Source of the DNA: Podarcis bocagei | Lineage: Eukaryota | DNA: 64,000 nucleotides | Assembly (NCBI GenBank): GCA_964188305.1 | Contig: OZ076893.1 | Reading direction: 5' to 3' (one strand) | Shown: positions 14,471 to 59,789 of the stretch, piece after piece | How the letters are laid out: each line of letters begins with the position of its first letter | Position numbering within the stretch: position 1 is the first letter of the stretch | Position numbers and translations under genes: made by a program | Notes under the pieces: generated by a model | What the model saw: only the letters and a program-made list of their open reading frames with translations | The model's database searches: none | What the model was told of the DNA's origin: nothing

Positions 14471-14487
14471 TTTATTTTAGAAAATTA

Positions 14488-18404: not shown

Positions 18405-20073
18405 ATGGACCGCCTCACTGCAGCAAACAGTGCCTTTGCCCTCAATCTGTTCAAGAAGCTAAGTCAAAATGATAATACAGCGAACATGTTTTTTTCTCCT
18501 TTGAGCATTTCTGCTGCTTTGACGATGCTCTCTCTGGGGGCGGCAGGGAACACTGCAGCCCAAATGGCAAAGGTATATCCAGATAAATACTATTAAGGGG
18601 ATGGGGGAGCTTGACTTTTGACTCTTAAATGAGGCATGCATGGTGCATCCTTTTCTTTGCAGCAGGTCAGGCTGAAATATGCATTTATTAGCGGGCCCTT
18701 AAGGCTACTAGTGAACTCCCGTTGCGCGGTCCCTGCTCCTGCCCACCTAGCTGTTCCAAAGCACGTCAAAATGCAAGTAAATAAATAGGTACCACTCCGG
18801 CAGGAAGGTAAACAGCGTTTCCGTGCGCTCTGCTGGTTTCACCAGAAGTGGCTTAGTCATGCTGGCCACATGACCTGGAAAAACTATCTGCGGACAAACA
18901 ACTCTGGGGTTGCGGTGCTCATCTTGCTTTACTGGCTGAGGGAGCCAACGTACAGCTTCCGGCTCATGTGGCCAGCGTGACTAAGCCGCTTCTGGCGAAC
19001 CAGAGCAGCACATGGAAATGCCGTTTACCTTCCCGCCGGAGCGGTACCTATTTATCTACTTGCACTTTGACGTGCTTTTGAACTGCTAGGTTGGCAGGAG
19101 CAGGGACCGAGCAACAGGAGCTCACCCAGTCACAGGGATTCGAACTGCTGACCTTTCACTCTCTTGTTTGCCAAAAGACGTGGATTTTCAACTGATAACA
19201 TGTTTTTTAGGATTACGTGGAGGCGGTTGGAGGATGGATGGCGGCTAACAGATTGAGGTTGAATCCTGACAAGACAGAAGTACTGTTTTTGGGGGACAGG
19301 AGGCGGGCAGGTGTAGAGGATTCCCTGGTCCTGAATGGGGTAACTGTGCCCCTGAAGGACCAGGTGCGCAGCCTGGGAGTCATTTTGGACTCACAGCTGT
19401 CCATGGAGGCACAGGTCAAATCTGCGTCCAGGGCAGCTGTTTACCAGCTCCATCTGGTACGTAGGCTGAGACCCTATCTGCCTGCGGACTGTCTCGCCAG
19501 AGTGGTGCATGCTCTGGTTATCTCCCGCTTGGACTACTGCAATGCACTCTACGTGGGGCTACCTTTGAAGATGACCCGGAAACTGCAATTAATCCAGAAT
19601 GCAGCAGCTAGACCGGTGACTGGGAGTGGCCGCCGAGACCATATAACACCGGTCTTGAAAGACCTGCATTGGCTCCCAGTACGTTTCCGAGCACAATTCA
19701 AAGTGTTGGTGCTGACCTTTAAAGCCCTAAACGGCCTCGGTCCAGTATATCTGAAGGAGCGTCTCCACCCCCATCATTCTGCCCGGACGCTGAGGTCCAG
19801 CGCCGAGGGCCTTCTGGCGGTTCCCTCATTGCGAGAAGCAAAGCTACAGGGAACCAGGCAGAGGGCCTTCTCGGTAGTGGCGCCCGCCCTGTGGAACGCC
19901 CTTCCAGCAGATGTCAAAGCGATAAACAACCACCTGACATTCAGGAGACATCTTAAGGCAGCCCTGTTCAGGGAAGTTTTTAACGTGTGATATTTTATTG
20001 TATTTTTGGTTTTTATGGAAGCCGCCCAGAGTGGCTGGGGAGGCCCAGCCAGATGGGCGGGGTATAAATAATA

Positions 20074-20127
<54 letters not shown>

Positions 20128-23100
20128 CTGTATTTAAATTACTTAACATTATCTGTTAACCATTTATCATCTTACAGGTGCTGTCTGTGACCAACGACGT
20201 CGAGTTTCACCAGGGATACGAGAAACTTATTTCTGAAATCAACAAGCCAGACACCAAGTACTTGCTTAGGCTAGCCAACAGGCTCTTTGGAGAAACATCC
20301 TATGAGTTTATTTCAGTAAGTTACATGGTTTACAAATATGCTAGAGAACAGGAAGTGGTCTCTGTTCAGATAGTGAACCGTGTTCTGTCGCAGATCAGAA
20401 ACGCAGCTAAGCACACACTATCCCTTCTGTACTTTCCAGTAAAACCTTCCATCAAACTGAAAGGGACATTTGAATTCGCAGCAGTGATCAGCTTGAGTCC
20501 AGGTGGCAGGTTGTACCAGCCAATCTACTTGGTGGATAGATTCATTTCTTTCTCTTTCCCCCTGTCCTTACTTGGCACCACTCGCACTGGATGCTTTTTG
20601 TAAGCTGCTCTTGTAAAGCTCCAAAACTGCAGGGTAGCTAATGCTGGATCATAACATTCTTTGTTTGGGAAAAGAGACTGCTTATGGGATGTTGGATCCC
20701 AAAGCACCCTTTTGTTTCTAGCATGTTGGCTCATGAATTTGGTCTAGCCTGCCCAGCCTTTTACAGAGGTCTGCCAACCCCCAAAACCATTGTTGACAGA
20801 AGCTTCAGAGGCAGTGAGCAGCAGATCAGAGTGCTCTCCATTTTGGTGACTTGCTTCCCCAGCAAGAAGCAGAATGAAGTACTCAGGAAATGGGAGGGAA
20901 TGCGACTACATTTTCTGAGCTCTTGACTATCTGCAGCCTGTGCTTCTCTCCTTCTCTCATTCGCATTTTTTTTTATATTGTGTAAATGATGGCATTGCAC
21001 TGGAAGGCAATTTCCCTTAGCATTTGCACGGGAGTTCACAGACCAGCACTACTGCATTTCCCACTGTGTGTTACATTTATGACATGCTTGTGAACTTCCA
21101 GGGACAGAACGGTAGACTAAGTGGAGCTTTTGCTAGATCAAGCCAAGAGGATAATTACATTTAAAAAACAACTGTAATACAACAGGTAGATGCGGTGGCG
21201 CAGCGGCAGCAGGAGGCCCCATTAACTAAAGTGATGCTTCAGGTTAAGAACAGTTTCAGGTTAAGAACGGACCTCCGGAATGAATTAAGTACATAACCCG
21301 AGGTACCACTGTACATTTTTAAAAGAACAACTGTAATATAGCAGGTAGTCGGCACTTTCCAAAGACTTACCAAATTTGGGGACGAATAAGTATTGCTTAA
21401 ATAACAGTTTTACTCCATAGAGAAACAGAAAGAGAAAATACCACATTGGAATTCATTATCCGCCTGCATTGAGCAGGATTGATACGGGGCAAATATTGGT
21501 AAGCATTTAGCATCCTGCATACAGACCTTTCATGTAGGACTCTCATATACAGTGGTACCTCGGGTTAAGTACTTAATTCGTTCCGGAGGTCCATTCTTAA
21601 CCTGAAACTGTTCTTAACATGAGGTACTACTTTAGCTAGTGGGGACTCTTACTGCTGCCGTGCTGCCGGAGCACGATTTCTGTTCTCAACCTGAAGCAAA
21701 GTTCTTAACCTGAAGCACTATTTCTGGGTTAGCAGAGTGTGTAACCTGAAGCGTATGTAACCTGAAGCGTATGTAACCCGAGGTACCACTGTATAAGAAT
21801 AAGACAATGATTGCTATGTGTATTCTTGAGCAAAAGAAGTTTGTTTGGGTCCGGTTCAGTCCATCTGTTTTGGCTGATAGGAATCTATTGCACATGCCAT
21901 GACCTTTTTCTTATCAACTGAAGTTAAATTAAGCATCTGCATACGTGTTTCACATCTTTCGGTATCTGAAAATGGAAGAAACATCCTTCTCTCCCTCTCT
22001 TTTCTGTGGGACAAAACCTGAATGAAATCAAAGTTTGTTTGTATATGATATATACAGATCCATATATAGCTTTTAATTCTGAAACATATTTGTTTAAGTC
22101 ATTCATAGACTCCAGCCAGAAATTCTATCGAGCAGGTCTAGAGAAACTAGACTTCATTAAAGCATCAGAGGATTCCAGAAAATACATTAATAATTGGGTG
22201 GAAGAACAGACAGCAAGTGAGTAGCAAATTCTTGGGCTTCCATATTGTCTGAGGTTTAGTTCTTAAAATATGAGTTTGTGTCTAAAAAATATGTACTTAT
22301 TAAAACAGCTCTTTAATCCCTCTTCAAGGTAAAATCCAAAATCTGCTCACCCCAGGACTAATTGACTCCAGTACAAGGCTGGTCTTGGTGAATGCTATCT
22401 ATTTCAAGGGAAACTGGGCAAATCAGTTCCTCAAAGATGACACTGAGGAAAGGCCGTTCAAAGTTAGCAAGGTATGAGGTGGGAAATAATGTGAAGAACA
22501 TCACTGAGCACAGTCTTTATCATTTTGATTACATACACACATTCTGATATTTGGAGTGTTCCCTCCTTCTGTTTTTTTCTTTCATCAGTTGACCAGTTGG
22601 GATTTCCCTTCCCACCATGTCCTAAGGACATTCTTTTGCAGAGATAACAGAGGATGAACAGTACACAAGGTGCAGAGCAGCTCAAGCAATGCAATAGAAA
22701 AGATTACATGCTTAAAACGAAATTCTTCTCCGTTTGCAGAATGAAAGCAAACCGGTGCAGATGATGTTCAAGGAAGCTAAATTCAACATGACATACATAT
22801 CGGAACTTCGCACCCAAATTCTTGAGATTCCTTATGTTGATAACGAGCTCAGCATGATCATCCTGCTTCCTGATGAGATTGCAGATAATTCTACAGGCCT
22901 GGAAAAGGTGAGGCATTTTTGATAAGAATAAAACCATCTAAATTCTTGCCCGTAAAAATTGCCCTTGTATGACGAGAGCATTCTAGCTTCCAACTTCTAA
23001 GTGATTCTTCCAAGTGCCCAGTGTAACTTATTATATTGTTGGCATCTGTCTGTCTTGAGAGACAATGGAGTGTGCCTTCAGAGGTGAAGTCAAACCACCA

Positions 23101-26100
23101 TGCTAGCAGCGCCGAAATGACCTCCTTGGGGTCAGTGCCGAATTTACGTATAAGCTAAACAAGCTGTAGCTTAGGGTCCCACTATTTTGGGGGCCCCCCC
23201 CCCCAAATATGTAAGGGGAAAAAAACCTAGATGTACTTTTCCAAAATATAAGATAAAAAACAAATAAAATAAAACCTACACATAGCAACAGTGTTTTGTG
23301 TTGTATAGGCTCCTATAATGTAAGTAATGCGTCCCGCCTGCCAGCCTGCTCCCTAAAATATCACTGGTTTGCTCATTTCTATGTATGTGGTGCCTGCATT
23401 CTGCATGTGCAAATAGCTTTAGATACCTTTTAGGTCCATAAATTACTATACTGGAGAATTTCCTTCATTCTTTCAGCTAAAATATAGGTATACAATTTAT
23501 AAACATTGTTCAACATGCTGACAGCTTCTAGGAGACACAGGTGAGAGCCGAGTACAGGGTGGGGGAACCAAAGGTGGATAAATTACCCCAGAAGGAGCAA
23601 TATAGCTGTTTATATTTCTATAAGCATAGTTAAGTCTGCCAGTGTTCTGTCTTATTCAGAAAGATGGAAGGCATAAAAGCAAGTTGAGCAGAAAGGAATT
23701 CTACCCGGACAGACAGGGCAATTGTAAAACAAGTTTACCGTATTTTTCGCCCTATAGGACGCACCGGCCCATAGGATGCACCTAGATTTTTTGGGGGGGG
23801 AATAAAGGGAAAAAAATTATTTCCCCCCCCCCAGGCGCAGGGCTGGGGCGGGAGAAGCCCGAGCTTCCCCCGACCCCAGCCCCCAGAATGGGAGCCAGAG
23901 CGATGCCAAAGGTGAGCGCACCGGCATCGCTCTGGGACCTTGCGCGGCTGGGGGCGGGGGGAGCTGGAGCTTCCCCCGACCCCAGCCCCCCGAACGGGTT
24001 GGAGAGCGATGGCGAAGGTGCTCGCACCTTCGGCATCACTCTGGGACCTTGCGCGGCTGGGGGCGGGGGGAGCCGGAGCTTCCCCAGTCCCCAGAGCAGG
24101 TCCGAGAGTGCTGGCGAAGGTGAGCGCACCTTCGCCATCACTCCCAGAGCTTGCGGGGCTGGGGGTGGGGGAAGCCCAAGCTGGGGGTGGGGGAGGTTGA
24201 GCCGCGCAAAGTCCCAGAGCGATGGCGAAGGTGCGCGCACCTTCGGCATCGCTCTCCGACCCGTTCGCCGGGCTGGGGACGGGGAAAACTCCGGCTCCCC
24301 CCGCCCCCAGCCGCGCAAGCTCCGAGAGCGATGGCGAACGTGCGCGCACCATCGCCATCGCTCTCTGACCTGTTCTGGGGGCTGCGGTCGGGGGAAGCTC
24401 CGGCTTCCCCCGCCCCCAGCCGCGCAAGCTCCGAGAGCGATGGCGAACGTGCGCGCACCTTCGGCATCGCTCTCCGACCCGTTCGCGGGGCTGGGGACGG
24501 AGGAAACTCCGGCTTCCCCCACCCCCAGCCCCGCAAGCTCTGGGAGTGATGGCGAAGGTGCGCTCACCTTTGCCATTGCTCCCGGAGCTTGCAGGGGCTG
24601 GGGGTGGTGGAAGCCCGAGCTTCCCCCGCCCCCAGTCCCCAGAGCAGGTCGGAGAGCACTGGCGAAGGTGCGCGCACGTTCGCCATCGCTCTCGGAGCTT
24701 GCGCGGCTGGGGGCGGGGGAAGCCGGAGCTTCCCCCGACCGCAGCCCCCAGAACAGGTCAGAGAGCGATGGCGATGGTGCGCGCACGTTCGCCATCGCTC
24801 TCGGAGCTTGCGCGGCTGGGGGCGGGGGGAGCCGGAGTTTTCCCCGTCCCCAGCACGGCGAACGGGTCGGAGAGCGATGGCGATGGTGCGCGCACCTTCG
24901 CCATCGCTCTGGGACTTTGCGCGGCTCGACCTCCCCCACCCCCAGCTTGGGCTTCCCCCAGTCCCCAGAGCAGGTCCGAGAGTGCTGGCGAAGGTGAGCG
25001 CACCTTCGCCATCACTCCCAGAGCTTGCGGGGCTGGGGGTGGGGGAAGCCCAAGCTGGGGGTGGGGGAGGTCGAGCCGCGCAAAGTCCCAGAGCGATGGC
25101 GAAGGTGCGCGCACCTTCGGCATCGCTCTCCGACCCGTTCGCCGGGCTGGGGACGGGGAAAACTCCGGCTCCCCCCGCCCCCAGCCGCGCAAGCTCCGAG
25201 AGCAATGGCGAACGTGCGCGCACCTTCGGCATCGCTCTCCGACCCGTTCGCGGGGCTGGGGACGGAGGAAACTCCGGCTTCCCCCACCCCCAGCCCCGCA
25301 AGCTCTGGGAGTGATGGCGAAGGTGCGCTCACCTTTGCCATTGCTCCCGGAGCTTGCAGGGGCTGGGGGTGGTGGAAGCCCGAGCTTCCCCCGCCCCCAG
25401 TCCCCAGAGCAGGTCGGAGAGCGCTGGCGAAGGTGAGCGCACCTTCGCCATCACTCCCAGAGCTTGCGGGGCTGGGGGTGGGGGAAGCCGGAGTTTCCCC
25501 AGCCCCCAGAACAGGTCAGAGAGCGATGGCGATGGTGCACGCACCTTCGGCATCGCTCTGGGACCTTGCGCGGCTGGGGGGATAGCTTCCTGAAGCCTGG
25601 AGAGCTGGGGGGGGGGAGTGCGTCCTATAGGGCGAAAAATACGGTAAGTGATGTACATGGAGTCATTTGAGTCACTGTGGATCCAGTGAAAATGGTTTTA
25701 TGTAAGAAATGTGAGGATTTATATATGCAGCCAGGATTTCCTTTTTTCCTTGAATGCCTTGTATTTGTCTTATTTTAGCTGGAGAAAGAAATGACCTATG
25801 AGAAACTCAAGGATTGGATTAACCCTGAGAAGATGGACCTAACTGAAGTTCAGCTGTCTCTACCCAAATTTAAACTGGAGGAAAAATACGACCTGAAGCC
25901 TGTTCTGAGCAGCATGGGAATGGCTGAGGCGTTTGACCCAAGCAAGGCGGATTTCTCCAAGATGTCTCCCAACAATGACTTGGTTTTGTCAGAGGTTGTT
26001 CACAAATCCTTTGTAGAGGTAAACGAAGAGGGAACTGAGGCTGCTGCTGCTACTGCTCCTGTTATGAATTTCCTGTGTTATAATTTTGTGCTGAGTTTCA

Positions 26101-26183
26101 CAGCCGACCATCCCTTTCTCTTCCTCATTCGGCACAACAAAACACAAAGCCTTCTCTTCTATGGTAGGTTTTGCTCTCCCTGA
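18405..26183 (+). CDS. SERPINB6: SERPINB6-like paralogue A (379 aa; RCL ...APVMNFL|CYNFV)
   Basis: Exons 18405-18572, 20178-20315, 22099-22216, 22329-22471, 22740-22907, 25779-26183; open frame, no CD-loop exon, C-terminus GRFCSP; near-identical to copy C outside the RCL. Confidence 0.88.
18712..18900 (+). mobile_element. Sauria SINE fragment
   Basis: Similar to 278-627; same position as the fuller copy at 43256. Confidence 0.8.
18901..19155 (-). mobile_element. Sauria SINE fragment, inverted
   Basis: Reverse complement of the SINE body. Confidence 0.85.
19217..20122 (+). mobile_element. Young 5'-truncated L2-clade LINE (RT C-terminal region intact)
   Basis: 257-aa stop-free ORF with [41 protein letters not shown]; (TAT)n tail; absent from copies B and C. 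Confidence 0.9.
21550..21791. mobile_element. Tc1/mariner (Tigger-like) MITE, copy A only; a partial inverted copy lies at ~21190-21311
   Basis: TIR CAGTGGTACCTCGGGTTA, TA TSD; empty site CTCTCATATATAAGAATAAG in copy B. Confidence 0.85.
23738..25644. mobile_element. 1.9-kb non-autonomous Tc1/mariner-superfamily element filled with a palindromic ~109-bp minisatellite
   Basis: Perfect TIR CCGTATTTTTCGCCCTATAGGACGCAC, TA TSD (23736-37 / 25645-46); empty site in copies B and C; 16 palindromic cores inside. Confidence 0.88.
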
Positions 26184-26185
26184 AG

Positions 26186-26402
26186 CAAGCTAACTTCTCA
26201 GGAATGTCAAAGAAAAGTGACTTGGCTTTGTCAGAGGTGTATCACAAGTCCTTTGTGGAGATCAATGAAGAGGGCATTGAGGCAGCAGCTGCCTCAGCAG
26301 CCACCGTTGTAATAAGGTCATCTCAGCATCCCATAAAATTAGAAGCAAACCACCCTTTCATCTTCAAGCACCCTCTTCTTTGGCAGATTCTCTTTGCCAT
26401 AG
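26186..26402 (+). pseudogene. Duplicated 3' half of the SERPINB10-like last exon fused directly after the copy A stop codon
   Basis: Homologous to 13761-14000 ([30 protein letters not shown]); no splice acceptor; hinge T->I; 12-nt plus 11-nt deletions (frameshift); followed by a copy of the SERPINB10-like 3' UTR. Confidence 0.9.
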
Positions 26403-28759
26403 AATGGGGTTGCTGATGCAATGAACCCACTGGTACCTCCCATGGTAAACACACTCTCAAAAATAAAAAATGCATAAGACAACTTCCTGCCCTTCCTGCT
26501 AATTTAATGTTGACACTGGCTTTGCCTTTCTTTCTCTCCTCTGCCAACAGCCATTTTGTGTCAGACCACACGCCCCATGGCAGCCATTTTGTGACTGGCG
26601 CCCATAGCAGTTTCTCAAAATTCCACATTTCCTCATTGGTCCAAAAAGTTTGGCAATCTGAGTATAAATGCTTAGGAGCAGGCTGATATACCACAGGCAT
26701 CACATTGAGGCCTAATGCTGTTTTAGACATAACCTATATAAGCTTTTCTGCCTTCCTTCTGTTACCCAAATCTGTCTCTGTACATGACAAGTGTGCAGCA
26801 TCACATTCTTAATTCTTCTCTAAATGCCGGTCATTATTGTCTGTAAAACATGCATTTTAAAGCAAGAAATGTAGTTTTGAAACTTATGTTTCCACTGTGA
26901 AAACAGTGCAGCCCACTTGCATTAAAATAATTGACAACACTCCTGTTTGTTTGTTTGTTTATTTATTTTATATATTCATCATCTCACCAACTGGTTAGTA
27001 CAAAGAAAGAGCAATTAGACGGAACCTGTTCCAAACTGGAGGATATATTCCGGACCAGTTGGGATAGAATGGGAAATGCATGCAAAATCCAGAGGCTTCT
27101 GGGAGAACGTCATTTGACAAGTTCTAATTGAGTCAAGTCTCTGCTCTTCAGAAATGGTTAATGTTCCTATACGTATTTTCTTCAAGTGTCGTGATCTGAG
27201 TTCTCCTTTTGCATCACTGATAGGCACATTCTGGTACCTCTGTTTCCTCACGGCTTGCTTGCATTTCAGGCATTAGAAGTTTGCTCTCTGCATTTATGCA
27301 CCAGCTGTCCGTTATGCTTAACCTTACTCAGTTGCAACACAGCATCACCAGGGTCAGAATCCTAACTGGTACCCGTCCTCGTTTCCCAATAGCAATGGTC
27401 TTAGAAACTATAGCAGGATCTCCTTCTCAGGCCTCAACATGGTTCTAACAGGGCATCATAATCTCACCCAGGTAGTCTGACCTTTGTTTTAAGCATCGTA
27501 GTTGTGTGTATTGGGCAACAAATTGAAGGCATGAATACGTTTATAACCCAGGTTCCCCACATGGTTATAATAATTTATTATTTATACCCCGCCCATCTGG
27601 CTGGGTTTCCCCAGCCACTCTGGGCGGCTTCCAAAAGAATATTAAAATACTATGATACATCAAACATTAAAAGCTTCCCTAAACAGGGCTGCCTTCAGAT
27701 GTCTTCTAAAAGTCTGGTAGTTGTTGTTCTCTGGTCGCTTTCAGTAGATCAAATGGTGTCCCGCCGTGCTTTCATTTGAAGAGATGGGACTCCCTCAACA
27801 CTCCTCATAAACACACTCTTATGGGCAGGACACCCAAATCCCAACACTTCTCCGGAATAGTCCACAGATTAATCACCACATACCCAGAGATTCCTCTGAA
27901 CTGTACAAGCTTACCCAATCTTTCCGGAGAATATTGCAGTCATCAAAAAATCAGACTGGATGTTCACATCCTTCCCCCAGCATGTCCGGGAAAAAACAAC
28001 AACACTCAGTATGGCCAGAAATATTCAAGCCTGCATATCTAGAATATACACCTCAAAGGAGCTGATTTCACCCAAAGGTCATAGTGGTTCCTTGGTTTAC
28101 AGAAGTACGTGCGTCGTCTCTTTTTTCAGGTTGTATTTTCTAGGGATCAATTCCATTTGTTGCGAGACATTCATGTTCGTAAAATAACCCAAGGCTCCCC
28201 GCACGCACAACCTCTCTCACTACCAAGGAAATGCAATAAATCAGTGTTATGTATTGAGTTTAACACATTTTATGTTACAAGGCGCATTCTAACCAATCAC
28301 AGAAGCGTTGGTAGATGAACACTTAGCTGTCAACCTTCCCTTTTTTTGCGGGAAATTCCCTTATTCCAACGCCGTTTCCCGCTGCTATCCCGGATTGTTA
28401 GATATCCCATAGACTGTCCCCTGGACTGGTGAGGCTGCTGATCCCTTATTTTCTAATCTGACAGCTATGGACCTGCGTTCTAATGGCAAGTAAGCACATG
28501 CTCTTTCAACTGTCAAACTGTCAACGGTCAGTTTATCCTCGGCATTATTATCGTGTTGTCCAGTCAGTTTGGTTCTTGTGTTCCTATGAGTGAGCTGTTG
28601 TCACTGACAAATGCTGAATAAACTTACACTGCCTTGGGCTTCTGACTTCTTCCGAACATTTAACAATCAGCGAATAGAAAGAGGATCTATCCAAACGACG
28701 CCGACACTAAGTAAAAGAATATGAGCTTTACCCTATAAACTGCATTGTCTGTATTAATG

Positions 28760-29300
28760 TCAGGCTCCCCGGGTTTGCGCAGCCAGGCGCCTTTACTCGG
28801 GAGTAAGCCTGCGGGGATTACTTCTGCAGCGCCAACAACCAGCGCGAGCAGGGCGCAATTGCGCTTTCGCAGCGCCACCTTCCTGCTCCGAGAGGCTTCT
28901 CCGTTTCTGAAAAAGCAGGCGGCGATGGGGAAAAAGAAGACGGGCAGCGGCTTCGTTTCCTCCTGCTGGGCATGTGCGAGCCGTTCTGCACATGCTCAGT
29001 GGCAATGGAAGCCGGCCGCAAACTTGGGGGCTCGAAGCTGCGGCTCCTTCCCCTCCCCACCCTATTAGGTTCCTGGATAGCGGCTGAGTCAGGGGCTGAG
29101 TCACAGGAAGGAGCGCCTCCCCTGGCAGGACGGGATGGTTTCGTACCTCCTACTCGGGTTTCCCGTCGCCACTCGGTGCCTCTCTTTGCTCGCAGCCGGA
29201 GCCCTTCCTGCGATCCGTGCGTAACAGCCGCGCGCATTTCTCACGGTACAGTCCTCTTCTCTTTGGGTTGCCATTTGTACCTGTTGCGTGTCTTTTAAAG
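28760..29300 (+). promoter_or_regulatory. CpG-island promoter/exon 1 of SERPINB6 copy B
   Basis: Paralogous to 16960-17530; tandem GCTGAGTCA at 29083-29104. Confidence 0.68.
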
Positions 29301-29875: not shown

Positions 29876-30120
29876 CAGTGGTATCTCGGGTTACATACAC
29901 TTCAGGTTACATACGCTACAGGTTACAGACTCCGCTAACCCAGAAATAGTACCTCGGGTTAAGAACTTTGCTTCAGGATGAGAACAGAAATAGTGCAGCG
30001 GCGGCGGCACGGCAGCAGCAGGAGGCTCCATTAGCTAAAGTGGTGCTTCAGGTTAAGAACAGTTTCAGGTTAAGAACGGATCTCCGGGATGAATTAAGTA
30101 CTTAACCCGAAGTACCACTG
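29876..30120. mobile_element. Tc1/mariner (Tigger-like) MITE
   Basis: Same family as 21550, opposite orientation, TA flanks. Confidence 0.8.
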
Positions 30121-33500: not shown

Positions 33501-34839
33501 TTGCCCTTGTTGGTACATGACCAGAGCATTCTAGCTTCCAACTTCTACGTGATTCTTCCAAGTGCCCAGTGTAACTTATTATATTGTTGGCATCTGTCTC
33601 AAGAGACAATGGAGTGTGCCTTCAGAGGTGAAGTCAAACCACCATGCTAGCAGCGCCGAAATGACCTCCTTGGGGTCAGTGCCGAATTTACGTATAAGCT
33701 AAACAAGCTATAGCTTAGGGTCCCACTATTTTGGCCCCCCCCAAAAAAAAAATGTAAGGGGAAAAAACCCTAGATGTACATTTCCAAAATATAAGATAAA
33801 AAACAAATAAAATAAAACCTACACATAGCAACAGTGTTTTGTGTTGTATAGGCTCCTGTAATGTAAATAATGGGTCCTGCCTGCCAGCCTGCTCCCTAAA
33901 ATATCACTGGTTTGCTCATTTCTATATATATGGTGCCTGCATTCTGCATGTGCAAATGGCTTTAGATACCTTTTAGGTCCATTACTATACTGTATAATAG
34001 TTTGGAGAATTTTCTTAATTCTTTCAGCTAAAATATAGGTATACAATTTATAAACATTGTTCAACATGCTGACAGCTTCTAGGAGCCACAGGTGAGAGCT
34101 GAGTACAGGGTGGGGGGAACCAAAGGTGGATAAATTACCCCAGAAGGAGCAATATATGTTTAATATAGTGGTTATATTTCTATAAGCATAGTTAAGTCTG
34201 CCAGTGTTCTGTCCTATTCAGAAAGATGGAAGGCATAAAAGCAAGTTGAGCAGAAAGGAATTCTACCCGGACAGACAGTGCAATTGTGAAACAAGTTTGT
34301 TTAAGTGATGTACATGGAGTCATTTGAGTCACTGTGGATCCAGTGAAAATGGTTTTATGTAAGAAATGTGAGGATTTATATATGCAGCCAGGATTTCCTT
34401 TTTCCTTGAATGCCTTGTGTTTGTCTTATTTTAGCTGGAGAGAGAAATGACCTATGAGAAACTGAAGGATTGGATTAACCCTGAGAAGATGGACCTAACT
34501 GAAGTTCAGCTGTCTCTACCCAAATTTAAACTGGAGGAAAAATACGACCTGAAGCCTGTTCTGAGCAGCATGGGAATGGCTGAGGCGTTTGACCCAAGCA
34601 AGGCAGATTTCTCCAGCATGTCTCCCAACAATGACTTGGTTTTGTCTGAGGTTGTTCACAAATCCTTTGTAGAGGTAAATGAAGAGGGAACTGAGGCTGC
34701 TGCTGCTACTGCTGCTGTAATGACTAAGCGGCGTGCTAGGATTGTGCCCTGTGTCACAGCCGACCATCCCTTTCTCTTCTTCATTCGGCACAACAAAACA
34801 CAAAGCCTTCTCTTCTATGGTAGGTTTTGCTCTCCCTGA
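30516..34839 (+). CDS. SERPINB6: SERPINB6-like paralogue B (379 aa; RCL ...AAVMTKR|RARIV)
   Basis: Exons 30516-30683, 30919-31056, 32652-32769, 32867-33009, 33282-33449, 34435-34839; intact frame and splice sites. Confidence 0.88.
31337..31795 (-). mobile_element. L2 LINE 3' fragment
   Basis: Degenerate reverse complement of ~19620-20080. Confidence 0.75.
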
Positions 34840-34841
34840 AG

Positions 34842-35069
34842 CAAGCTAACTTCTCAGGAATGTCTAAGAAAAGTGACTTGGCTTTGTCAGAGGTGTATCA
34901 CAAGTCCTTTGTGGAGATCAATGAAGAGGGCATTGAGGCAGCAACTGCCTCAGCAGCCACCGTTGTAATAAGGTCATCTCAGCATCCCATAAAATTAGAA
35001 GCAAACCACCCTTTCATCTTCAAGGCAACAAAAAGCACCCTCTTCGTTGGCAGATTCTCTTTGTCATAG
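34842..35069 (+). pseudogene. Duplicated 3' half of the SERPINB10-like last exon fused directly after the copy B stop codon
   Basis: Same junction (CCCTGAagCAAGCTAAC), same hinge T->I change and same 12-nt deletion as the fragment at 26186. Confidence 0.9.
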
Positions 35070-37880: not shown

Positions 37881-39861
37881 GGGGGGGGTTCCTGATGTTG
37901 TGTGTGTGTGTGTGGTTAAAAGCTGCCTCGTCTTGGACTGCTGTTATTTTGGTAAGCTGAGGAAGAAAATCAATATCTGATCCTAACTTCCAGAAAGGTA
38001 GGCGTGTTGTGAGTGGCTTGCGCGCAACGAAATTTCATGGAGCGCCTTAAAGGCTGCCAGCTTTATTGCGCGCAAAAAACTTCCAGGAACTTAATAGTCC
38101 AATACATCAAATATGCTTGCAAAAAACGTTGTACCATAACTAATAAAAGCAGGTTCTTGCCTTCAGAAGTTGATGCTGCGGTATCTATCTATCTATCTAT
38201 CTATCTATGTCAGTGGTAACTACTAACTGAAGTCGTTGCTTACTGGATTGCAAAGGGCAAGCCTGGTGGATTGCTTGGCAGCAGCGTCTGGGACTTCCTT
38301 TCTTGAAGTCGAGCGCTGAAAGTAATCTGGGAGGGTCCAGGGTGTTGTCCAAGACTGGCACCTGTAGGACTGGCGCTTTTGTGCTTTGAACAGCTGCATG
38401 ACAGAGGCAGAAATTCAATAGTTGCAGCTTTCCATTCTGTGTTTCTCTAATGGGAAAGGCTTCAGCTGCTGGATTTCTGCCTTCTGTGCACAGCTGTTAG
38501 CGCACAGGAGCTTTGCGGGGGGGGGGGGAGGGAGAGATAAAACCCACCTTGGTGCCTGTTCTTGATTGGCGTTTGTTGGGTTTGTTTGTCTTTATATTTG
38601 CACTGAAAAATTTAATCACCTGCAGAGCATGGAAGAAGTGGATTTTAATGAGTTTTCCTTGTGCATGTGCAGCAACCAATTCCTAAAACTCTTTTATTGG
38701 CTTGCTTATTAGGATGCAGCAGACTGCCTACCTGTTCCTTGGAAATAAATTAAAGGGGGAAGTTCCTGGCGTTCCTGCCCACACCTTAGGCTGGGTTCTA
38801 AAGTGTCGGTTAAGCAGGGAGCCTCCCAGCAGCTAGGAAAGAGTGGGGTGCCTGGCAGAGATTGGCATGCCATGCTGTCAATTACGACACCCAACTGAGG
38901 AGTGTAGCAACTGCATTGCCAACACACAGGAGTGAAGCAAATAGAGGAACCGACTTTGTGCCACAGGAAGGATGTGCAGCTTATGTGCCAACACAGAGCC
39001 ATAGTTTTCCATTGTACGTATTCACCAGCCTTGTGAGGGTGGCTCCTCTTCTGTCCCTATCCTTCCCTGAGAGGCTGGGAAACTTCTCATTGTGTATCCT
39101 GGTATCATTAAATACTACTATGACAAAACAGCTGATCTTCAGACACTGGTGCATTTTCAAGGCAGGAGGGAGTAGTAACCGGTTGTTTTCTGTTTCTTTT
39201 TGCTCCGAAATCTCTAAATAGCAGTGGAATGTGGAAGGAATACTTCTGTTTTTAAATACATTCAATTTGTCAGAGTAAACAAGAGATGGAAATCCCTTTA
39301 TGGTACAGATACTATTTTAACCAGGCAGTTTTGAACTGGCAAGCATTGGATGGATAGTAATTAAGAGTTCTTTTTTTAAAAAAACAACAACCCACCAACC
39401 ATAAGACTTTCTAATTATTTGTCTTTTATACTTTGCCGTCTCTAGGAATAGGCAGAAGGCAGCTTAAGATCTATTGGTAAAATCTCTAGGTTATTTGCAG
39501 TAGGTTTTGTGTTTTAACCATTGCAACAGCAAATGACTGCAGCTGAAATGAAGATTGCCTCGTGGGCATCCCTTGAGCACAACTGAGCAAGGATTCTCCC
39601 TGTAGCGTTTGGTAATAATGCAAAGCCTGCCTCCGCTGTTGTGCCCTTCAAACTGAAGCAGAACTTGGCCACATTCTCTCCACCATCTGTAAGAGCATCC
39701 AGATTCTGTCCAGAAGAGCACTCAGAGTACTTCAACAATCAATCCCTCTTCCCTGAGGAATTCTGGCCTTGTAGCTCTGCAGGGAGCGGGGAATGGGGTC
39801 TCTTAGCAACCTTAACAAAGTACAGTTTCTTTGATTCTTTGGAGATGGAAGCTATGGCTGT

Positions 39862-40180
39862 AATAATGATGATGATGATTTATTTATACCCTGCCCATCT
39901 GGCTGAGTTTCCCCAGCCACTTTGGGTGGTTCCCAACAGAATATTAAAAACACGATAAAAGATGAAACATTAAAAACTTCCCTAAACAGGGCTGCCTTCA
40001 GATATCTTCTAAAACTCAGATAGTTGTTTATTTCCTTGACATCTGATGGTAGGGCGTTCCACAGGGTGGGCCCTCTGTCTGGTTCCCTGTAACCTCACTT
40101 CTCGTAGCGAGAGAACCGCCAGAAGGCCCTCGGAGGAGGACCTCAGTGTCCGGGCTGAATGATGGGGCTGGAGACTCCTT
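39862..40180 (-). mobile_element. L2 LINE 3' fragment
   Basis: Reverse complement of the L2 3' end. Confidence 0.75.
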
Positions 40181-41385
40181 TAAAGTGTTATGATACTGCT
40201 TTAAGCACACACTGCAGATGGGGCCATTCACCTTGCTTCTTTTTTATCCATTTGATTGCTTTGTGGAGGGTTTTCTCTTTTTTTGCAATGCCTCTTTGTA
40301 GCTGTGTGGCTGAACTGGATGTAGATCTTGATTGCTAAAACCAACCAACCAATCAAGTAAGGTAATTTGTTGAGGGTGGGAGGAATAACTTTAGGGATGT
40401 GTTTGGAGTGCTTGAGCTCTCGGTGGGTCTATTGTGGTAAAATAACACCAGAGGTGTGGAGCCCTATAATGTGGCCCCCCAACCATCTCTATATCTCGGC
40501 CCTCCCTCCATCAGTAGGCCAAGACCCTCACTGGTCCCACTCTGGACCTCTTCTTGAGTTCTTCTGCCTGGTTGGAATAGTCCTTGGACTGTGATGATTG
40601 ATGCCTCTTGCTTGCCTGGACAAATGCATCATGGGTGTAGAAATCCCTGTCACTTTGTGTGGCTGGAATGTAACCTGCAGTACAAAGGTAAAAGTCACAC
40701 CTGTTGCCGCACCTACGTTTGCCTCTGGCTGCACCCAGCGCTGGCATTCCCTGGAAGGATCTGCGTTCTGGGGAATGAAGAAGGTGACCCACCCTCCTTC
40801 AATAATGGAACAAACAAATTTGGATAGTACAATTCCATGCCTGAAGCTAGAGTGCTTTCCAAGCAGAACTAGCACCCCAGACCAATTCAGAGAACTGCTT
40901 GGTTGTGTATACACTAATACAAAGAGAGAGCACCCGTTCTTTCTCTGTCCCAGGCGGCCTCTGTGTAATCGGAGATCTTTCGTAGAAGGCCTGGCTCAAG
41001 GCCGAGAAGACTGTCTCTGTTACAACGCAAAGCAAACAGAAGACAGGGCTTAATGCCATGTCTTCAACCAGAAGCATATTTTTCATGTTCTTTTTTAAAC
41101 GGTCCTCAATACAAATGTATAAAACATTGTGTCTCGTAATGAACAAAAGAGACATATTATAACTGGAAACGTACCAAAAGAATTAGGAAAGACTGCTTTC
41201 AAAGGCATTGGACAAGAAGCTGGATAACATAGCAAAGGATTTCACTTTAAAAAAATAAAATACAGCATAAGTATGTATTCTGTAACTCAAAAGCTCAAAT
41301 CACACTGTGAATCTTCATGGTTCCCTTATTTACGGTATTATAACCACTCAGAATTCACAAGGTGGTGCCAAAGTTAATTATTCCA

Positions 41386-41388
<3 letters not shown>

Positions 41389-41424
<36 letters not shown>
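41389..41424. repeat. (TG)n microsatellite
   Basis: Direct reading. Confidence 0.9.
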
Positions 41425-41426
<2 letters not shown>

Positions 41427-42948
41427 TCTTTAGAATGTTAGAATTATTTTTTAAAGGAATCAGGATAAACAAAGGCCGGCTGACACCAACTCTGCAGGAT
41501 CAGTGCTCTTTTCAAGTCAGTGGCATCAAGCACCACATTGTGGATTGTGTCGCAGTATGTTTACAGGCTGGCTTCTTGACGTGAAGCAGAGAGTTTTCCA
41601 CAACTGTACTTTTCTGTGGGAAATATTCCGTGCCCAAAAATGCGTTGTTTCATACAGTGAATTAGCATTCTAAATAATGAATACAAGAGATAGCTTTTCC
41701 TCTTTGTCTAGAATAAAGAGATGACCTGCGGTGACTTGAAATTGGCAGTGTGGTAACTAAACAAACCTCCTGAGTAATCCTGATATTAGGTTGCTAAGTT
41801 TATACCCTTATGTATTTTAATTACACTGAATCCTCAGCCATGTCGTATGGTAAAAAATATTATATATAACAGATGTGTTGTATAGCTTTTCTTACCTGCT
41901 TAACCCTGTCTGTATGAGAGTTGTGTATTTCCCTGACTGCTAATGTTTTGCAGAGAGATCAGAGCCATTTGGGATCGCTTCCCTAAGGATTTTTTTCTGT
42001 GCCTTTAAATAGGTTCACAGCTTGGAGCAGTTCTGAAGGCTTCGCTTTCCTTTCCTTTCCCCTGTGATGGAAGAAAAAGCACATGCCAAAATTCTGGTTT
42101 TAAATAACAAGGAAATGTGTGCTAGCTTGGCAAGAGTGCTGTGTGTTTTGTTTTGTTTTGTTTTGTTTTGTTTTGTTTCAAAAACAAGAAAACCTGGGCT
42201 TGGCAGCTCTGCCAGCCAGAAAAAAAATGGCAGAGTTCCTGTGTCTCTGAACCTCCAAGACAGATAAATCCAGCAGGCGAAGCTTGTCCCATTGGATCTT
42301 CATGCCAGGAAAATGTTCAGATGTGAATTTCATGGGGCTGGGTTGATTTAGTGTGCCCAGTATCAAACAGGACTTAATGCAAACTTGATCCCGTTCAGGA
42401 CTCAGTTTATCAAACATAGACTTAATTGCGAAAGTCAGGCTATTATAGCTGTTGGCTTGCTAACTTAATTCTGCGACCTGAGGCTTTAATAGTCCTGTTT
42501 TTGAGGCTAGAATTATGCAGTGGGGAGGGACAACAGGCTCTCAAATGATGCTTTCCCTCCCTCTATGTCTTTTTATGTCCCAAAGCGGGTAATGTTGCAT
42601 GTAAGATGCAATAGACTTTTAATTTAAAGCTGATCTTCTTAGAAATCAAGTGAAGGCGAATGTTATTCTCATCCTGGGCATCTAAAGAAATGTAGCATGT
42701 GATTGACGGTTCCTCTGAGGGCTGCAGGCCCCCCCCCCCACACACACCAGAAAACGGTGGGTGGGTGGCCTTTGGGAGAGCATTAAAATGTTCCAGCTTG
42801 GGACTTGCAGGTTGATATGCCCTTAGGACACATGTGTGGGATCTGAAAACAAATGTTTATTTTTGTTTTGTTTTTCTTGTAAAAGTGACCTCCGAGCGGA
42901 CAAACTGGATGACTGTCTTCTCTGTGCTTGTTTCGTAGGTTATAAGAC

Positions 42949-45900
42949 ATGGACCGCCTCACTGCAGCAAACAGTGCCTTTGCCCTCAATCTGTTCAAGA
43001 AGCTAAGTCAAAATGATAATACAGCGAACGTGTTTTTTTCTCCGTTGAGCATTTCTTCTGCTTTGACGATGGTCTCTCTGGGTGCGGCAGGGAACACTGC
43101 AGCCCAAATGGCAAAGGTATATCCAGATAAATACTATTAAGGGGAGAGGGGAGCTTGAGTTTTGACTCTTAAATGGGGCATGCATGGTGCATCTTTTTCT
43201 CTGTAGCAGGTCAGGCTTAAATATGCATTTATTAGCGGGCCCCTAAGGCTACTAAGGGACGCGGGTGGCGCTGTGGGTTAAACCACAGAGCCTAGCACTT
43301 GCCGATCAGAAGGTCGGTGGTTCGAATCCCCGCGACGGGGTGAGCTCCCATTGCTCGGTCCCAGCTCTTGCCAACCTAGCAGTTCGAAAGCACGTCAGAG
43401 TGCAAGTAGATAAATAGGTACCGCTCTGGCAGGAAGGTAAACGGCGTTTCCGTGCACTGCTCTGTTTCGCCAGAAGCGGCTTAGTCATGCTGGCCACATG
43501 ACCTGGAAAAACTGTCTGCAGACAAATGCCAGGTTCCTCGGCTGGTAAAGCGAGATGATCCCCACAACCCCAGCACTATATACTCTTAAAAAGCCAATGC
43601 CAACTTGGTGTGCGAATGCCACCAAGTTTAGTTTGGCCCTAAGGGAGGACAGCTCATTGTGCTGAATCTAGAGAAAGCTAGTTTAGGATTGAGTGATTTA
43701 GACATACAGAAGGGGTTGGGAGGTAACACATACTGTGATCTGAAAATGATTCACTTTCAGCCTGTAATCATAGAGTCAAAACAGGCCTAGCATAGAGATG
43801 CATGCTCTGAGCCTTCTGCAGTGCATGGTGTATTGATGTGGGCATGTGTGTGTTGTGTCTTTTAAATACAATGAATGTAGAAAAGGTTACATGCTGTTCC
43901 CTAATAGAAAATTCTGCGGAACGTAACACTGAGAAAGGGGACTTCTTACAGCTTTTGCTTGCTGTTTATCACGCCACTGGAATGTTTATAACATAGGGAG
44001 TTTGTATTATCCTACACCACAAGTTGTAATTAACAAGTTTCTCCACAAGTTGCAATTAACTCCGTACGGCAGTAGCCCGGTTCACAAATTACTCACATGT
44101 CAGGCACTTGCATGGTAAATGGGGAGCAGGGCCACATTTTTAGCTACTTGACTGACATCATTTTGCTTCCTGCAATCACCCTGCATTGCATGTGTTTGTC
44201 TGAAGCCTTGACGCACAAGCTTCTGGTTTTATGTGGATGTCCTAGTCTCGTGGAACTCCTACATCCCAGCAAGAGTTTATGCACCGAGTTGATCTGGGAA
44301 GTGTCTGCAAATTGGAGTTGGAGCTAATAGCACGGCCCCATTCCCCAGTCACAATTGCCTTATGTGCAAGTAACACATGAACTGGACTTAGGTCATGGTT
44401 CCATAGGGAAGAATTCCTATTCACACAAAACAGAGTAAAAACCGCCATGCTTTGAATTCTTGAATTTAGTTTGTGGCCGCCTATTCGGCGAGGCCTGCAC
44501 AGCCCACCTAAGGAAATTAAGGCCACCACTCACGTATTTACAGTCTCTTTGATACTTTCAAGTGGGGCAGTCCTGCTAAATCAACAAAAACAGTACCAAA
44601 GAAGGACAATGGAACATGTGGGCTTTCTCTTTCTTGTCTAGCAGGTATTACCAGTATAACGGGAGGGGGGGGGAGCAAATTTAGATTCCATGTTTTTCTT
44701 CGCCAAAGGACACTTAGTTTTGTGTGCCCAGTTTGTCGTCTTGAATAAAGTTGACTTACATTAAAAGTATTTCTTGTTACACCCAGAATACCTTCCCGCT
44801 GCAGGGAGGTTCTTCTCCGTAATTGCAGTGGTTCTTTGGCCCTGTTGGTTTTTCTTAGGCTACTGGCAGCTGCGTGCATCTGTTTCTGCTGTGCCTGTCC
44901 CAAATGTTTCCTGAGCTCCTGATAAGCAGGTTGATCCTTAGCTATGGTTGGTTAGCACTGCCCAGAGTTCAGTTCTCAGTGCATCATCAAATTTTAGTTA
45001 CTCCATCCTTGCACAGAAGAACATGGCCAATGCTGAAACATGACTGCCCAGTTTTATTTAGAAAGTTAAGTTAAATTGTTAGGGGGAAGATAAAAACCCA
45101 GCAATTTAGTATGTGGTTTTTGTTATTGTTTTTTGAAAAGAATATGGGGAAACTAATAGTCACTCTCTTTTGCCTGCTTCCGTTCTAACTGCTTCAGATA
45201 TTTGTCTTGTGAAATCTTGAACAGGAACGGAACAATCTGCTTTCTGCTTCTTCATTTTTATTACTATCAAATCTCATTGTGAATTTGTTTTGTTTTTCCT
45301 CCTCAAACGGTAAGGCCCCCCAACAAATCATTGTTACAATGGTTGTTTGTTTTATATATTTTACTCTCTTGTTTGCTAAAAGACATGGATTTTCAACTGA
45401 TTACGGTTTTTTAGGAGTACATGGATAAATTTCTGTATTTTAATTTCTTAACATTATCCGTTAACCATTTATCATCTTACAGGTGCTGTCTGTGACCAAC
45501 GACGTCGAGTTTCACCAGGGATACGCGAAACTTATTTCTGAAATCAACAAGCCAGACACCAAGTACTTGCTTAGGCTAGCCAACAGGCTCTTTGGAGAAA
45601 CATCCTATGAGTTTATTTCAGTAAGTTACTTGGTTTACAAATATGCTAGAGAACAGGAAGTGGTCTCTGTTCAGATAGTGAACCGTGTTCTGTCGCAGAT
45701 CAAAAACGCACCTAAGCACTCACTATCCCGCCTGCATTGAGCAGGATTGATACAGGGGCAAATCTTGGTAAGAATTTAGCATCCTGCATAAGGACCTTTC
45801 ATGTAGGACTCTCATATATAATAACAAGAGAAGGATTGCTATGTGTATTCTTCAGCAAAAAAAGTTTGTTTGGATCTGGTTCAGTTTATCTGTTTTGGCT

Positions 45901-48362
45901 GATAGGAATCTATTGCACATGCCATGAGCTTTTTCTTATCAACTGAAGTTAAATTAAGCATCTGCATATGTGTTTCACATCTTTCGGTATCTGAAAATGG
46001 AAGAAACATCCTTCTCTCCCTCTCTTTTCTGTGGAACAAAACCTGAATGAAATCAAAGTTTGTGTGTATATGATATATATAGATTATATATAGCTTTTAA
46101 TTCTGAAACATATTTGTTTAAGTCATTTGTAGACTCCAGCCAGAAATTCTATCGAGCAGGTCTAGAGAAACTAGACTTCATTAAAGCATCAGAGGATTCC
46201 AGGAAATACATTAATAATTGGGTGGAAGAACAGACAGCAAGTGAGTAGCAAATTCTTGGGCTTCCATATTGTCTGAGTTTTACTTCTTAAAATATGAGTT
46301 TGTGTCTAAAAAATATGTTCTTATTAAAAAAGCTCTTTAATCCCTCTTCAAGGTAAAATCCAAAATCTGCTCGCCCCAGGACTAATTGACTCCAGTACAA
46401 GGCTGGTCTTGGTGAATGCTATCTATTTCAAGGGAAACTGGGCAAATCAGTTCCGCAAAGATCACACACAGGAAAGGCCGTTCAAAATTAGCAAGGTATG
46501 AGGTGGGAAATAATGTGAAGCACATCACTGAGCAAACAGTCTTTATCGTTTTGATTAAATACACACATTCTGATATTTGGAGTGTTCCCTCCTTCTGTTT
46601 TTTTCTTTCATCAGTTGACCAGCTAGGATTTCCCTTCCCACCATGTCCTAAGGACATTCTTTTGCAGAGACAACAGAGGATGAACAGTAAACAAGGTGCA
46701 GAGCAGCTCAAGCAATAGAAAAGATTATATGCTTAAAACGAAATTCTTCTCCATTTGCAGAATGAAAGCAAACCGGTGCAGATGATGTTCAAGAAAGCTA
46801 AATTCAACATGACATGGATATCGGAACTTCGCACCAAAATTCTTGAGATTCCTTATGTTGATAACGAGCTCAGCATGATCATCCTGCTTCCTGATGAGAT
46901 TGCAGATAATTCTACAGGCCTGGAAAAGGTGAGGCATTTTTGATAAGAATAAAACCATCTAAATTCTTGCCCGTAAAAATTGCCCTTGTTGGTCGCTGTA
47001 CACGACAAGAGAAAGATTATTCCAGCTTCTACGTGATTCTTCCAAGTGCCCAGTGTAACATGTTACATTGTTGGCATTTGTCTGTCTTGAGAGAGAATGG
47101 AGTGTGCCTCCAGGGGTGAAGTCAAACCACCATGCCAGCAGCGCCAAAGTGACCTCCCTGGGGTGTTAACCTGGGCAGTGTGTATAGACATCTTGGGCTG
47201 CCCAGACATGTTTGGCACCAGTTTGGCTGCAGGAGTTGCTGGAAAGAGGCGTGCAAGGCACCATCCAAGCATCTTGGGGACTCCATTCTGGATTTGTATA
47301 GAGTCTACTCCTTAGCCTTTCTTCTCCTGAAGTTATCCTGCAAGACAGTGGAGGTTTAGGATCAGAATTTCCCTTCTCCTAGATGGGCTACTTTCCCAGG
47401 TGATTAGCTGCATTTGCCCTTCATTTCCCTCTACAGCACTAACTGCCTTCTCGACCATTGCACCCACTATGGTCTTCTCCACTCAATCTGCCAGAGCCTA
47501 TATTTGCATGCAGGGCAAGTCCCTAACACACTGAGGGTTTGAGACCCATTGGCTACCCTCGCCTGATTTAGCCGGCCAGTCAAAGACATTTCCCAGATTG
47601 TGGCTTCTAGGAGCCACAGGTGAGAGCTGCGTGCAGGGTAGGAACCAAAGGTGGTTAAACTACCCCAGAAGGAGCAATATATGTGTAATATAGCTGTTTA
47701 TATTTCTATAAGCATAGTTAAGTCTGCCAGCATTCTGTCTTGTTCAGAAAGATGGAAGGCATAAAAGCAAGTTGAGCAGAAAGGAATTCTACCCGGACAG
47801 ACAGGGTAATTGTGAAACAAGTTTAATTGATGTACATGGAGTCATTTGACTCACCGAGAATCCAGTGAAAATGGTTTTATGTAAGAATTTTGAGGATTTT
47901 TATATGCAGCCAGGATTTCCTTTTTTCCTTGAATGCCTTGTGTTTGTCGTCTTTTAGCTGGAGAGAGAAATGACCTATGAGAAACTCAAGGATTGGATTA
48001 ACCCTGAGATGATGGACCTAACTGAAGTTCAGCTGTTTCTACCCAAATTTAAACTGGAGGAAAAATACGACCTGAAGCCTGTTCTGAGCAGCATGGGAAT
48101 GGCTGAGGCGTTTGACCCAAGCAAGGCAGATTTCTCCAGCATGTCTCCCAACAATGACTTGGTTTTGTCTGAGGTTGTTCACAAATCCTTTGTAGAGGTA
48201 AATGAAGAGGGAACTGAGGCTGCTGCTGCTACTGCTGCTGTTATGATGCTGCGGTGTGCTAGGATTGTGCCCTGTGTCACAGCCGACCATCCCTTTCTCT
48301 TCTTCATTCGGCACAACAAAACACAAAGCCTTCTCTTCTATGGTAGGTTTTGCTCTCCCTGA
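42949..48362 (+). CDS. SERPINB6: SERPINB6 canonical-type copy C (379 aa; RCL ...AAVMMLR|CARIV)
   Basis: Exons 42949-43116, 45483-45620, 46123-46240, 46353-46495, 46761-46928, 47958-48362. RCL MMLRCAR matches the mammalian SERPINB6 pattern (MMMRCAR). Has its own unique 3' UTR with AATAAA at 48741 and 49273. Confidence 0.92.
43256..43573 (+). mobile_element. Sauria SINE
   Basis: GGGACGCGGGTGGCGCTGTGGGTTAAACC head and SINE body. Confidence 0.88.

Positions 48363-59736: not shown

Positions 59737-59789
<53 letters not shown>

Follow-up and report, generated by a model that had tools for sequence, protein, structure and literature searches.

A lacertid array of three SERPINB6 paralogues that differ in their reactive-centre loops

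The locus described here raises the question of how three serpin genes with nearly identical scaffolds came to carry three different reactive-centre loops. The genes lie in a stretch of 64,000 nucleotides from the lizard Podarcis bocagei (GenBank assembly GCA_964188305.1, contig OZ076893.1), which we refer to as the window. No N occurs in it, and the five clade B serpin genes that it contains are all encoded on the + strand: U, which is SERPINB2/B10-like, the SERPINB6-like genes A, B and C, and D, which is SERPINB1-like (Table 1). An initial annotation of this sequence had described A, B and C as a young triplet of intact paralogues with loops under diversifying selection. Our analysis suggests that they are likely to form a lacertid-specific array of three functional SERPINB6 paralogues, placed between U and D, whose baits were diversified by positive selection. 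The gene structures, the duplication junction, the pattern of substitutions and the copy numbers in related species are direct results; that the copies are transcribed, that they inhibit proteases and which classes of protease they address are predictions made from their sequences. In the literature, we found no relevant paper on lizard SERPINB6.

Intact scaffolds and divergent loops

Gene C was modelled from tblastx matches to D and U together with splice sites, and its six coding exons were then mapped onto A and B with no gaps. The exon lengths are the same in all three genes (168, 138, 118, 143, 168 and 405 nt), giving 1140 nt, or 379 codons and a stop. Every intron is bounded by GT-AG and the frames are open, with no internal stop, so that the earlier description of three intact 379-residue paralogues holds for complete gene models. 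The intron phases over the six coding exons are 0,0,1,0,0 in A, B and C, the same as in the 7-exon clade B gene pattern listed in PMC1308813. No pair of the three genes differs by a coding insertion or deletion (indel), whereas non-coding sequence carries about 6 small indels per kb, a density that predicts about 7 for the comparison of A with B.

Membership in the family was examined by profile and by similarity searches. The Pfam Serpin profile (PF00079) was matched by exons 2, 6 and 7 of A at profile positions 2-51, 186-237 and 237-370 of 370, with E-values of 8e-16 to 2e-48, and the last exons of B and C matched equally well. Each protein starts directly in helix A and ends in ..GRFCSP, with no C-terminal extension and, as judged by reading of the sequence, no signal peptide. 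Relatives were gathered by searching 1.8 billion representatives with the last exon, searching again with the full-length newt protein obtained in this way, and then searching with the closest hit of that second round. The closest annotated hits were named 'serpin B6' or 'serpin B6-like' and came from lacertids, other squamates, turtles and birds; the nearest were 'serpin B6-like' proteins of Podarcis raffonei and P. muralis, followed by 'serpin B6' of Zootoca vivipara. The full A, B and C proteins share 92-97% identity with annotated P. raffonei and P. muralis serpins (92% for A against P. raffonei 'serpin B6-like'). As an orthologue set for comparison, we used 119 collinear SERPINB6-like proteins of amphibians, reptiles and birds. 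The inhibitory hinge EEGTEAAAA (P17-P9) is present in A, B and C and is identical in 114 of these 119 orthologues; it agrees with the hinge consensus of P17 Glu, P15 Gly, P14 Thr or Ser and small residues at P12-P9. Because the serpin scaffold and the inhibitory hinge are both kept, A, B and C have most likely retained the suicide-substrate mode of inhibition.

If the first Glu of EEGT is taken as P17, codon 344 encodes P1 and codons 339-352 encode the segment P6-P8'. The residues at P1↓P1' (the arrow marks the scissile bond) are then Leu↓Cys in A, Arg↓Arg in B and Arg↓Cys in C, with P1' codons TGT, CGT and TGT, exactly where the initial annotation had read them. Around this bond C has Met-Leu-Arg↓Cys, B has the basic Lys-Arg↓Arg-Ala-Arg, and A has the fully hydrophobic Asn-Phe-Leu↓Cys-Tyr-Asn-Phe. 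Between A and C, 15 of 42 nt differ in P6-P8', as compared with 9 of 360 nt in the remainder of the last exon; these had been approximate hand counts and proved to be exact. All 10 loop codons that differ between A and C are replacements, again as first reported. Across the three proteins 33 amino-acid columns vary, and 11 of them fall into the 14-codon segment that starts at codon 339. The next best non-overlapping segment of this length has 5 varying columns, and a count of at least 11 occurred in 0 of 100000 permutations.

The combination Arg↓Cys occupies P1↓P1' in 108 of the 119 SERPINB6-like proteins, and C therefore holds the ancestral bait, a status that it had already been given. The SERPINB6 bait Met-(Met/Leu)-Arg-Cys-Ala is present in C (MMLR↓CA) and differs in A (NFL↓CY) and B (TKR↓RA); A and B are SERPINB6 paralogues by descent, not SERPINB6-like in bait. 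The locus of P. raffonei and P. muralis has the order U, copy 1, copy 2 and SERPINB1-like gene. The P2-P1 residues Lys-Arg of B are common to copy 1 of both species, and P3 Thr and the P1' change from Cys to Arg are private to B. Loop types are stable features of the copies across species, the copy 1 type (Lys-Arg) being found in three species and the copy 2 type (Met-Leu-Arg↓Cys) likewise in three. To go by the P2-P1' residues alone, the predicted targets of A would be chymotrypsin, cathepsin G, chymase-like proteases or papain-like cathepsins, and those of B would be of the dibasic or convertase type.

Loops that depart from the canonical SERPINB6 form were also seen in other sauropsids, such as Tiliqua (..IIVPK↓FFVP) and Chelydra (..VFRTL↓CARI), and animals with such loops or with more than one copy include Sphenodon and Naja. 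Lineage-specific diversification of SERPINB6 may be common in reptiles.

The distribution of changes was then compared between the loop and the rest of each gene. Nucleotides unique to the A lineage make up 11 of 42 positions in the loop and 14 of 1095 in the rest (Fisher p = 1.4e-10), and each of the 8 loop codons changed on this lineage is a replacement. For the B lineage the corresponding counts are 3 of 42 and 5 of 1095 (Fisher p = 0.002). C, the P. raffonei and P. muralis genes and the Zootoca gene have 0-1 changes in the loop versus 3-26 in the rest, with no loop excess. Pairwise nonsynonymous divergence (dN) in the loop is 0.57-0.73 against a gene-wide synonymous divergence (dS) of 0.035-0.042, and the length of the A branch in non-coding sequence is about 3%. 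Relative to synonymous and non-coding sites, evolution has been far faster in the loop of A and, to a lesser degree, in that of B, and it has proceeded essentially by replacements only. The best explanation for this loop-confined excess of replacements is that, once the gene had been duplicated, positive selection favoured new target specificity, and the lineage counts agree in this respect with the diversifying selection that had been proposed for the loop.

Construction and history of the array

Self-alignment divided the locus into three tandem units, 13761-26185, 26186-34841 and 34842-48365. Each unit starts in the middle of the last exon of U (the first one at 13761) and ends 2 nt past a SERPINB6 stop codon. 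Fragments of the U coding exon, 217-228 nt in length, are located directly 3' of the stops of A and B and are followed by the 3' flank of U with its AATAAA, whereas C retains its native downstream sequence. Because the tandem unit starts within the U exon, the predicted 3' untranslated region (UTR) of A and B consists of a U exon fragment and the putative U poly(A) signal. Upstream of the ATG exon, every unit also has a CpG-island-like block, with a GC content of 0.47-0.59 and a CpG observed/expected ratio of 0.8-1.1 as compared with 0.2-0.4 in the flanks. We propose that the segment from the middle of the U last exon to 2 nt past the SERPINB6 stop was duplicated in tandem, and that the resulting unit would then have been duplicated again by unequal crossing-over. 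The scaffold would have remained under constraint, partly homogenised by recombination or gene conversion, while the loop changed.

The duplication junction, at which ..CCCTGAA runs directly into GCAAGCTAAC.., is identical in A, B and copy 1 of both P. raffonei and P. muralis; all of these therefore come from one event that preceded the split from P. raffonei and P. muralis. Within the U fragment, A, B and both copies 1 also have the same 12-nt deletion, and an 11-nt deletion is private to the fragment of A. In Zootoca, a single SERPINB6 gene is located between the upstream spacer and the SERPINB1-like gene, and there is no U-exon fragment. Since Zootoca has one copy, the array is lacertid-specific. 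Accordingly, of the independent squamate expansion suggested at first, the lineage-specific tandem expansion of an intracellular clade B serpin stands, but its range narrows from squamates to lacertids. The triplet had also been called young. It is not very young, because its junction is common to copy 1 of P. raffonei and P. muralis. Non-coding divergence is 4.4-5.5% between copies and 3.3-5.3% between species, and reaches 7-8% against Zootoca. In copy 1 of P. raffonei, the final 70 nt of the SERPINB6 coding sequence are repeated once more in direct orientation, between the stop and the U-exon fragment (15057-15126 of its fetched locus); this repeat is absent from P. muralis and from the window.

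A simple bifurcating history of the copies was considered and rejected, given mosaic site patterns and a coding tree that loses its resolution once the loop is removed; indel markers were therefore used instead. By these, B is the orthologue of copy 1 of P. raffonei and P. muralis. B and copy 1 are alike in three markers, namely a short intron 2 and, upstream, a deletion of 367 nt and an insertion of about 870 nt, and their proteins are only 9-10 residues apart. C is the orthologue of copy 2 and is 13 residues from that of P. raffonei. A has none of the three markers of B, and 14 derived sites just upstream of the gene are common to A, B and copy 1. These structural markers suggest, with moderate confidence, that the split between A and B also took place before speciation from P. 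raffonei and P. muralis. In both of these species the spacer between U and copy 1 resembles the A spacer at its 5' end and the B spacer at its 3' end. With similarly moderate confidence, the three-copy array appears to be ancestral and A to have been lost in P. raffonei and P. muralis by unequal crossing-over, the spacer being chimeric because one such crossover would have deleted A. The alternative that a two-copy array recently gained A was rejected as less parsimonious, as one crossover cannot leave the 367-nt deletion out of the first spacer while placing it in the second.

Leaving the loop aside, B and C differ at 0 of 198 positions in the 3' half of the last exon, and exchange between copies therefore continues. 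At codons 92, 126, 132 and 333, several substitutions are common to all paralogues within a species and distinguish P. bocagei from P. raffonei and P. muralis. Such patterns indicate that gene conversion has made the exons evolve in concert in both lineages, with loop codons 342-343 staying copy-specific.

The copies are further distinguished by kilobase-scale insertions and by the size of intron 2 (1605 nt in A, 235 nt in B and 2366 nt in C). Intron 6 of A contains a 1.7-kb array (23836-25580; 65% GC) that makes up most of the 3' part of the intron and is absent from B and C. It is built of direct and inverted repeats with 72-87% mutual identity and stops about 200 nt before the acceptor of the last exon. 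A dispersed repeat that resembles a short interspersed element, of about 250-340 nt and about 90% identity, occurs in both orientations at 280-625, 18901-19155, 43261-43508 and 57038-57383; independent copies of it are found within intron 2 of A and intron 2 of C. As for the flanking gene U, its loop reads ..TIVIR↓SSQKP, and its best solved relatives are PAI-2 and then MENT. The last intron of U contains a transposon-derived-looking open reading frame (ORF) of 217 aa on the - strand (12586-13239) without serpin similarity.

Table 1. Coordinates of serpin genes, loops and associated elements in the 64-kb window (arrow, P1↓P1' bond)
Feature	Position	Strand	Basis or detail
Gene A, SERPINB6-like, 379 aa	18405..26183	+	exons of C mapped gap-free
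A coding exons	18405-18572, 20178-20315, 22099-22216, 22329-22471, 22740-22907, 25779-26183	+	
Gene B, SERPINB6-like, 379 aa	30516..34839	+	exons of C mapped gap-free
B coding exons	30516-30683, 30919-31056, 32652-32769, 32867-33009, 33282-33449, 34435-34839	+	
Gene C, SERPINB6-like, 379 aa, ancestral reactive loop	42949..48362	+	tblastx and splice sites
C coding exons	42949-43116, 45483-45620, 46123-46240, 46353-46495, 46761-46928, 47958-48362	+	
A reactive-centre loop, P17 to P8' (..ATAPVMNFL↓CYNFVLSF)	26025..26099	+	P1 Leu CTG at 26073-26075
B reactive-centre loop (..ATAAVMTKR↓RARIVPCV)	34681..34755	+	P1 Arg CGG at 34729-34731
C reactive-centre loop (..ATAAVMMLR↓CARIVPCV)	48204..48278	+	P1 Arg CGG at 48252-48254
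Last exon of U, SERPINB2/B10-like clade B serpin upstream of A	13596..14000	+	ORF and Pfam match
Gene D, SERPINB1-like, downstream of C	about 54519-61037	+	loop ..IMLC↓S
U last-exon fragment 2 nt past A stop, start of A 3' UTR	26186..26402 (end approximate)	+	self-alignment
U last-exon fragment past B stop	34842..35069	+	self-alignment
Poly(A) hexamer from U 3' UTR, A +279	26462..26467	+	sequence motif only
Equivalent poly(A) hexamer, B +290	~35129-35134		motif only
Equivalent poly(A) hexamer, U original	~14060-14065		motif only
Equivalent poly(A) hexamer, C own	~48741-48746		motif only
CpG-island-like block upstream of A, putative promoter	16405..17904	+	
Block homologous to that of A, upstream of B, putative promoter	~28516-29515		
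Block homologous to that of A, upstream of C, putative promoter	~37000-37999		

Alternative explanations for the loop of A

Several observations weigh against positive selection in a functional array. The ratio of replacement to silent changes in the scaffold of A is 10:4, as compared with about 4:5 to 10:15 in the other lineages. Nearly invariant positions are altered in A: it has a P6 Pro, found in 0 of the 119 orthologues, its P6' Pro has become Leu (Pro in 116 of 119), and Ser37 has become Ala (Ser in 118 of 119). The inhibitory competence of A is therefore not to be taken for granted. A has no counterpart in the P. raffonei and P. muralis genomes and can therefore be dispensed with in these species at least. 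A tree of the coding sequences places A beside B and copy 1, with the topology ((A,(B,(Pr1,Pm1))),(C,(Pr2,Pm2)),Zootoca), where Pr and Pm denote the numbered copies of P. raffonei and P. muralis; it has bootstrap values of 53-83 and gives no resolution without the loop; since the copy phylogeny is reticulate and weakly resolved, the per-branch counts rest on parsimony. The pattern in A would also fit relaxed constraint or a loss of inhibitory function.

In this last reading, A would be a superfluous copy that drifts under relaxed constraint and is about to end as a pseudogene or as a serpin that no longer inhibits, and its odd loop would reflect the loss of function. The reading draws on the scaffold ratio, the unusual residues and the absence of A from both related genomes. 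We consider it unlikely. Drift cannot yield a change of 26% over 42 nt on a branch of about 3% in non-coding sequence; the changed loop codons are without exception replacements, although no change has affected the frame, the hinge or the C-terminal motif of serpins; and about 3-4 coding indels would be expected under neutrality where 0 are seen, with the splice sites also intact. More improbable still is a single-step origin of the A loop, in which a diverged serpin at some other place in the genome served as donor for a short ectopic gene conversion or for templated repair, in place of many point substitutions under selection. Interlocus exchange does occur here, as the mosaic sites and the identity of B and C around the loop indicate, and one proposal explains the hypervariability of reactive centres by gene conversion with subsequent selection (PMC3966226). 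However, a blastn-short search of the window with a 60-nt patch returned only the loops of B and C, at the patch edges, and the 15 new bases of A agree with the loop of D at 4 positions and with that of U at 5, as many as chance would give. Among about 310 fetched serpins, neither A-like nor B-like loop peptides were found in the loop position. The blastn-short search covers the 64-kb window, and a donor elsewhere in the genome is possible, which counts against selection as the source of the loop. Four codons inside the patch (340, 341, 345 and 349) are nevertheless unchanged, the patch has no indel, and fixation of such a patch would still require selection or drift. A compensated frameshift was also considered as the origin of the A loop and was rejected, because the loops align codon-for-codon without an indel and the same four codons are unchanged.

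It is very improbable that the three copies are an artefact of assembly, that is, alleles or collapsed or expanded repeats laid out in tandem. The third copy is present in this assembly only, and tandem arrays are prone to mis-assembly. Nevertheless, the window is free of N, non-coding divergence between the copies is as large as between species, and kilobase-scale transposon insertions and intron sizes differ from copy to copy. The two junction fragments also differ from each other, as in the 11-nt deletion found in that of A only, and the junction recurs in two independent chromosome-level assemblies, those of P. raffonei and P. muralis. In these species, B and C can be matched to separate orthologues, and A holds ancestral states that are absent from B and C, such as Tyr208.

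Positive selection on the loops of functional copies thus remains the reading that we prefer. A bolder version of it, which we offer only tentatively, is that A is a neofunctionalised intracellular inhibitor whose bait, hydrophobic or aromatic from P6 to P8' and without parallel among the SERPINB6 proteins seen so far, was shaped in an arms race. The opponent would have been one specific protease, either from the animal's own granules or from a pathogen, and the inhibitor may have turned to chymotrypsin-like or papain-like cysteine proteases as targets; A would then be a presence/absence gene among lacertids, deleted in P. raffonei and P. muralis. If true, this would provide a natural system for the rebuilding of a bait within about 3% neutral divergence.

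Comparison with known serpin expansions

The array offers a well-resolved natural case of an inhibitor that appears to have gained new specificities, in which the scaffold was held near-constant by constraint and exchange while 14 codons were rewritten. One junction and a few indels, compared over four genomes, give the order of events, and a coding exon of U appears to be reused as the 3' UTR of its neighbours A and B. The three copies are also near-isogenic natural serpins with which to ask how the loop alone sets the target range.

Mouse Serpinb6 paralogues have divergent reactive loops. The mouse genes Serpinb6a-e and Serpinb9 form expansions on chromosome 13 that have been described in PMC3880077. 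Like Serpinb6a-e, the lizard array is a lineage-specific tandem multiplication of SERPINB6 at the SERPINB1/B6 locus in which the scaffold is kept and the loops differ. In contrast to the mouse genes, it arose independently in lacertids, consists of three copies with about 4% synonymous divergence, and has a resolved junction and history.

The baits of A and B recall those of other clade B inhibitors. Human SERPINB8, which also belongs to clade B, inhibits furin and has an Arg-X-X-Arg loop, and SERPINB1 and SERPINB4 have a hydrophobic P1 or P2 and cathepsin G or chymase as targets. For SERPINB4, the target assignment is also found in PMC3880077. The Lys-Arg-Arg-Ala-Arg of B resembles the SERPINB8 bait, and the Phe-Leu of A resembles those of SERPINB1 and SERPINB4; to judge by this resemblance, B may address convertases or trypsin-like proteases, and A chymotrypsin-like ones. 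The hydrophobic P2 of A would fit papain-like cysteine cathepsins equally. The likeness extends over a few loop residues, and A and B, known here from their sequences, are not orthologues of SERPINB8, SERPINB1 or SERPINB4.

Acceleration of the reactive centre after duplication goes back to Hill and Hastie 1987, according to the passages of PMC3966226 and PMC4136820 that cite this work. Examples include the rodent Serpina1/Serpina3 clusters, great-ape SERPINB3/B4 and prey SERPINA arrays (PMC12646145). The lizard genes resemble these cases in their excess of replacements at the P and P' residues around the scissile bond, with the rest of the protein conserved and partly homogenised. They differ in that the known cases are mostly secreted clade A serpins or clade B serpins of the 18q21 type, whereas the lizard case concerns a cytoplasmic SERPINB6, and in that A has 8-9 of 14 loop residues changed within about 3% neutral divergence. 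The array is a new instance of the long-known fast evolution of reactive centres after duplication, and it leaves the general knowledge of serpin evolution unchanged.

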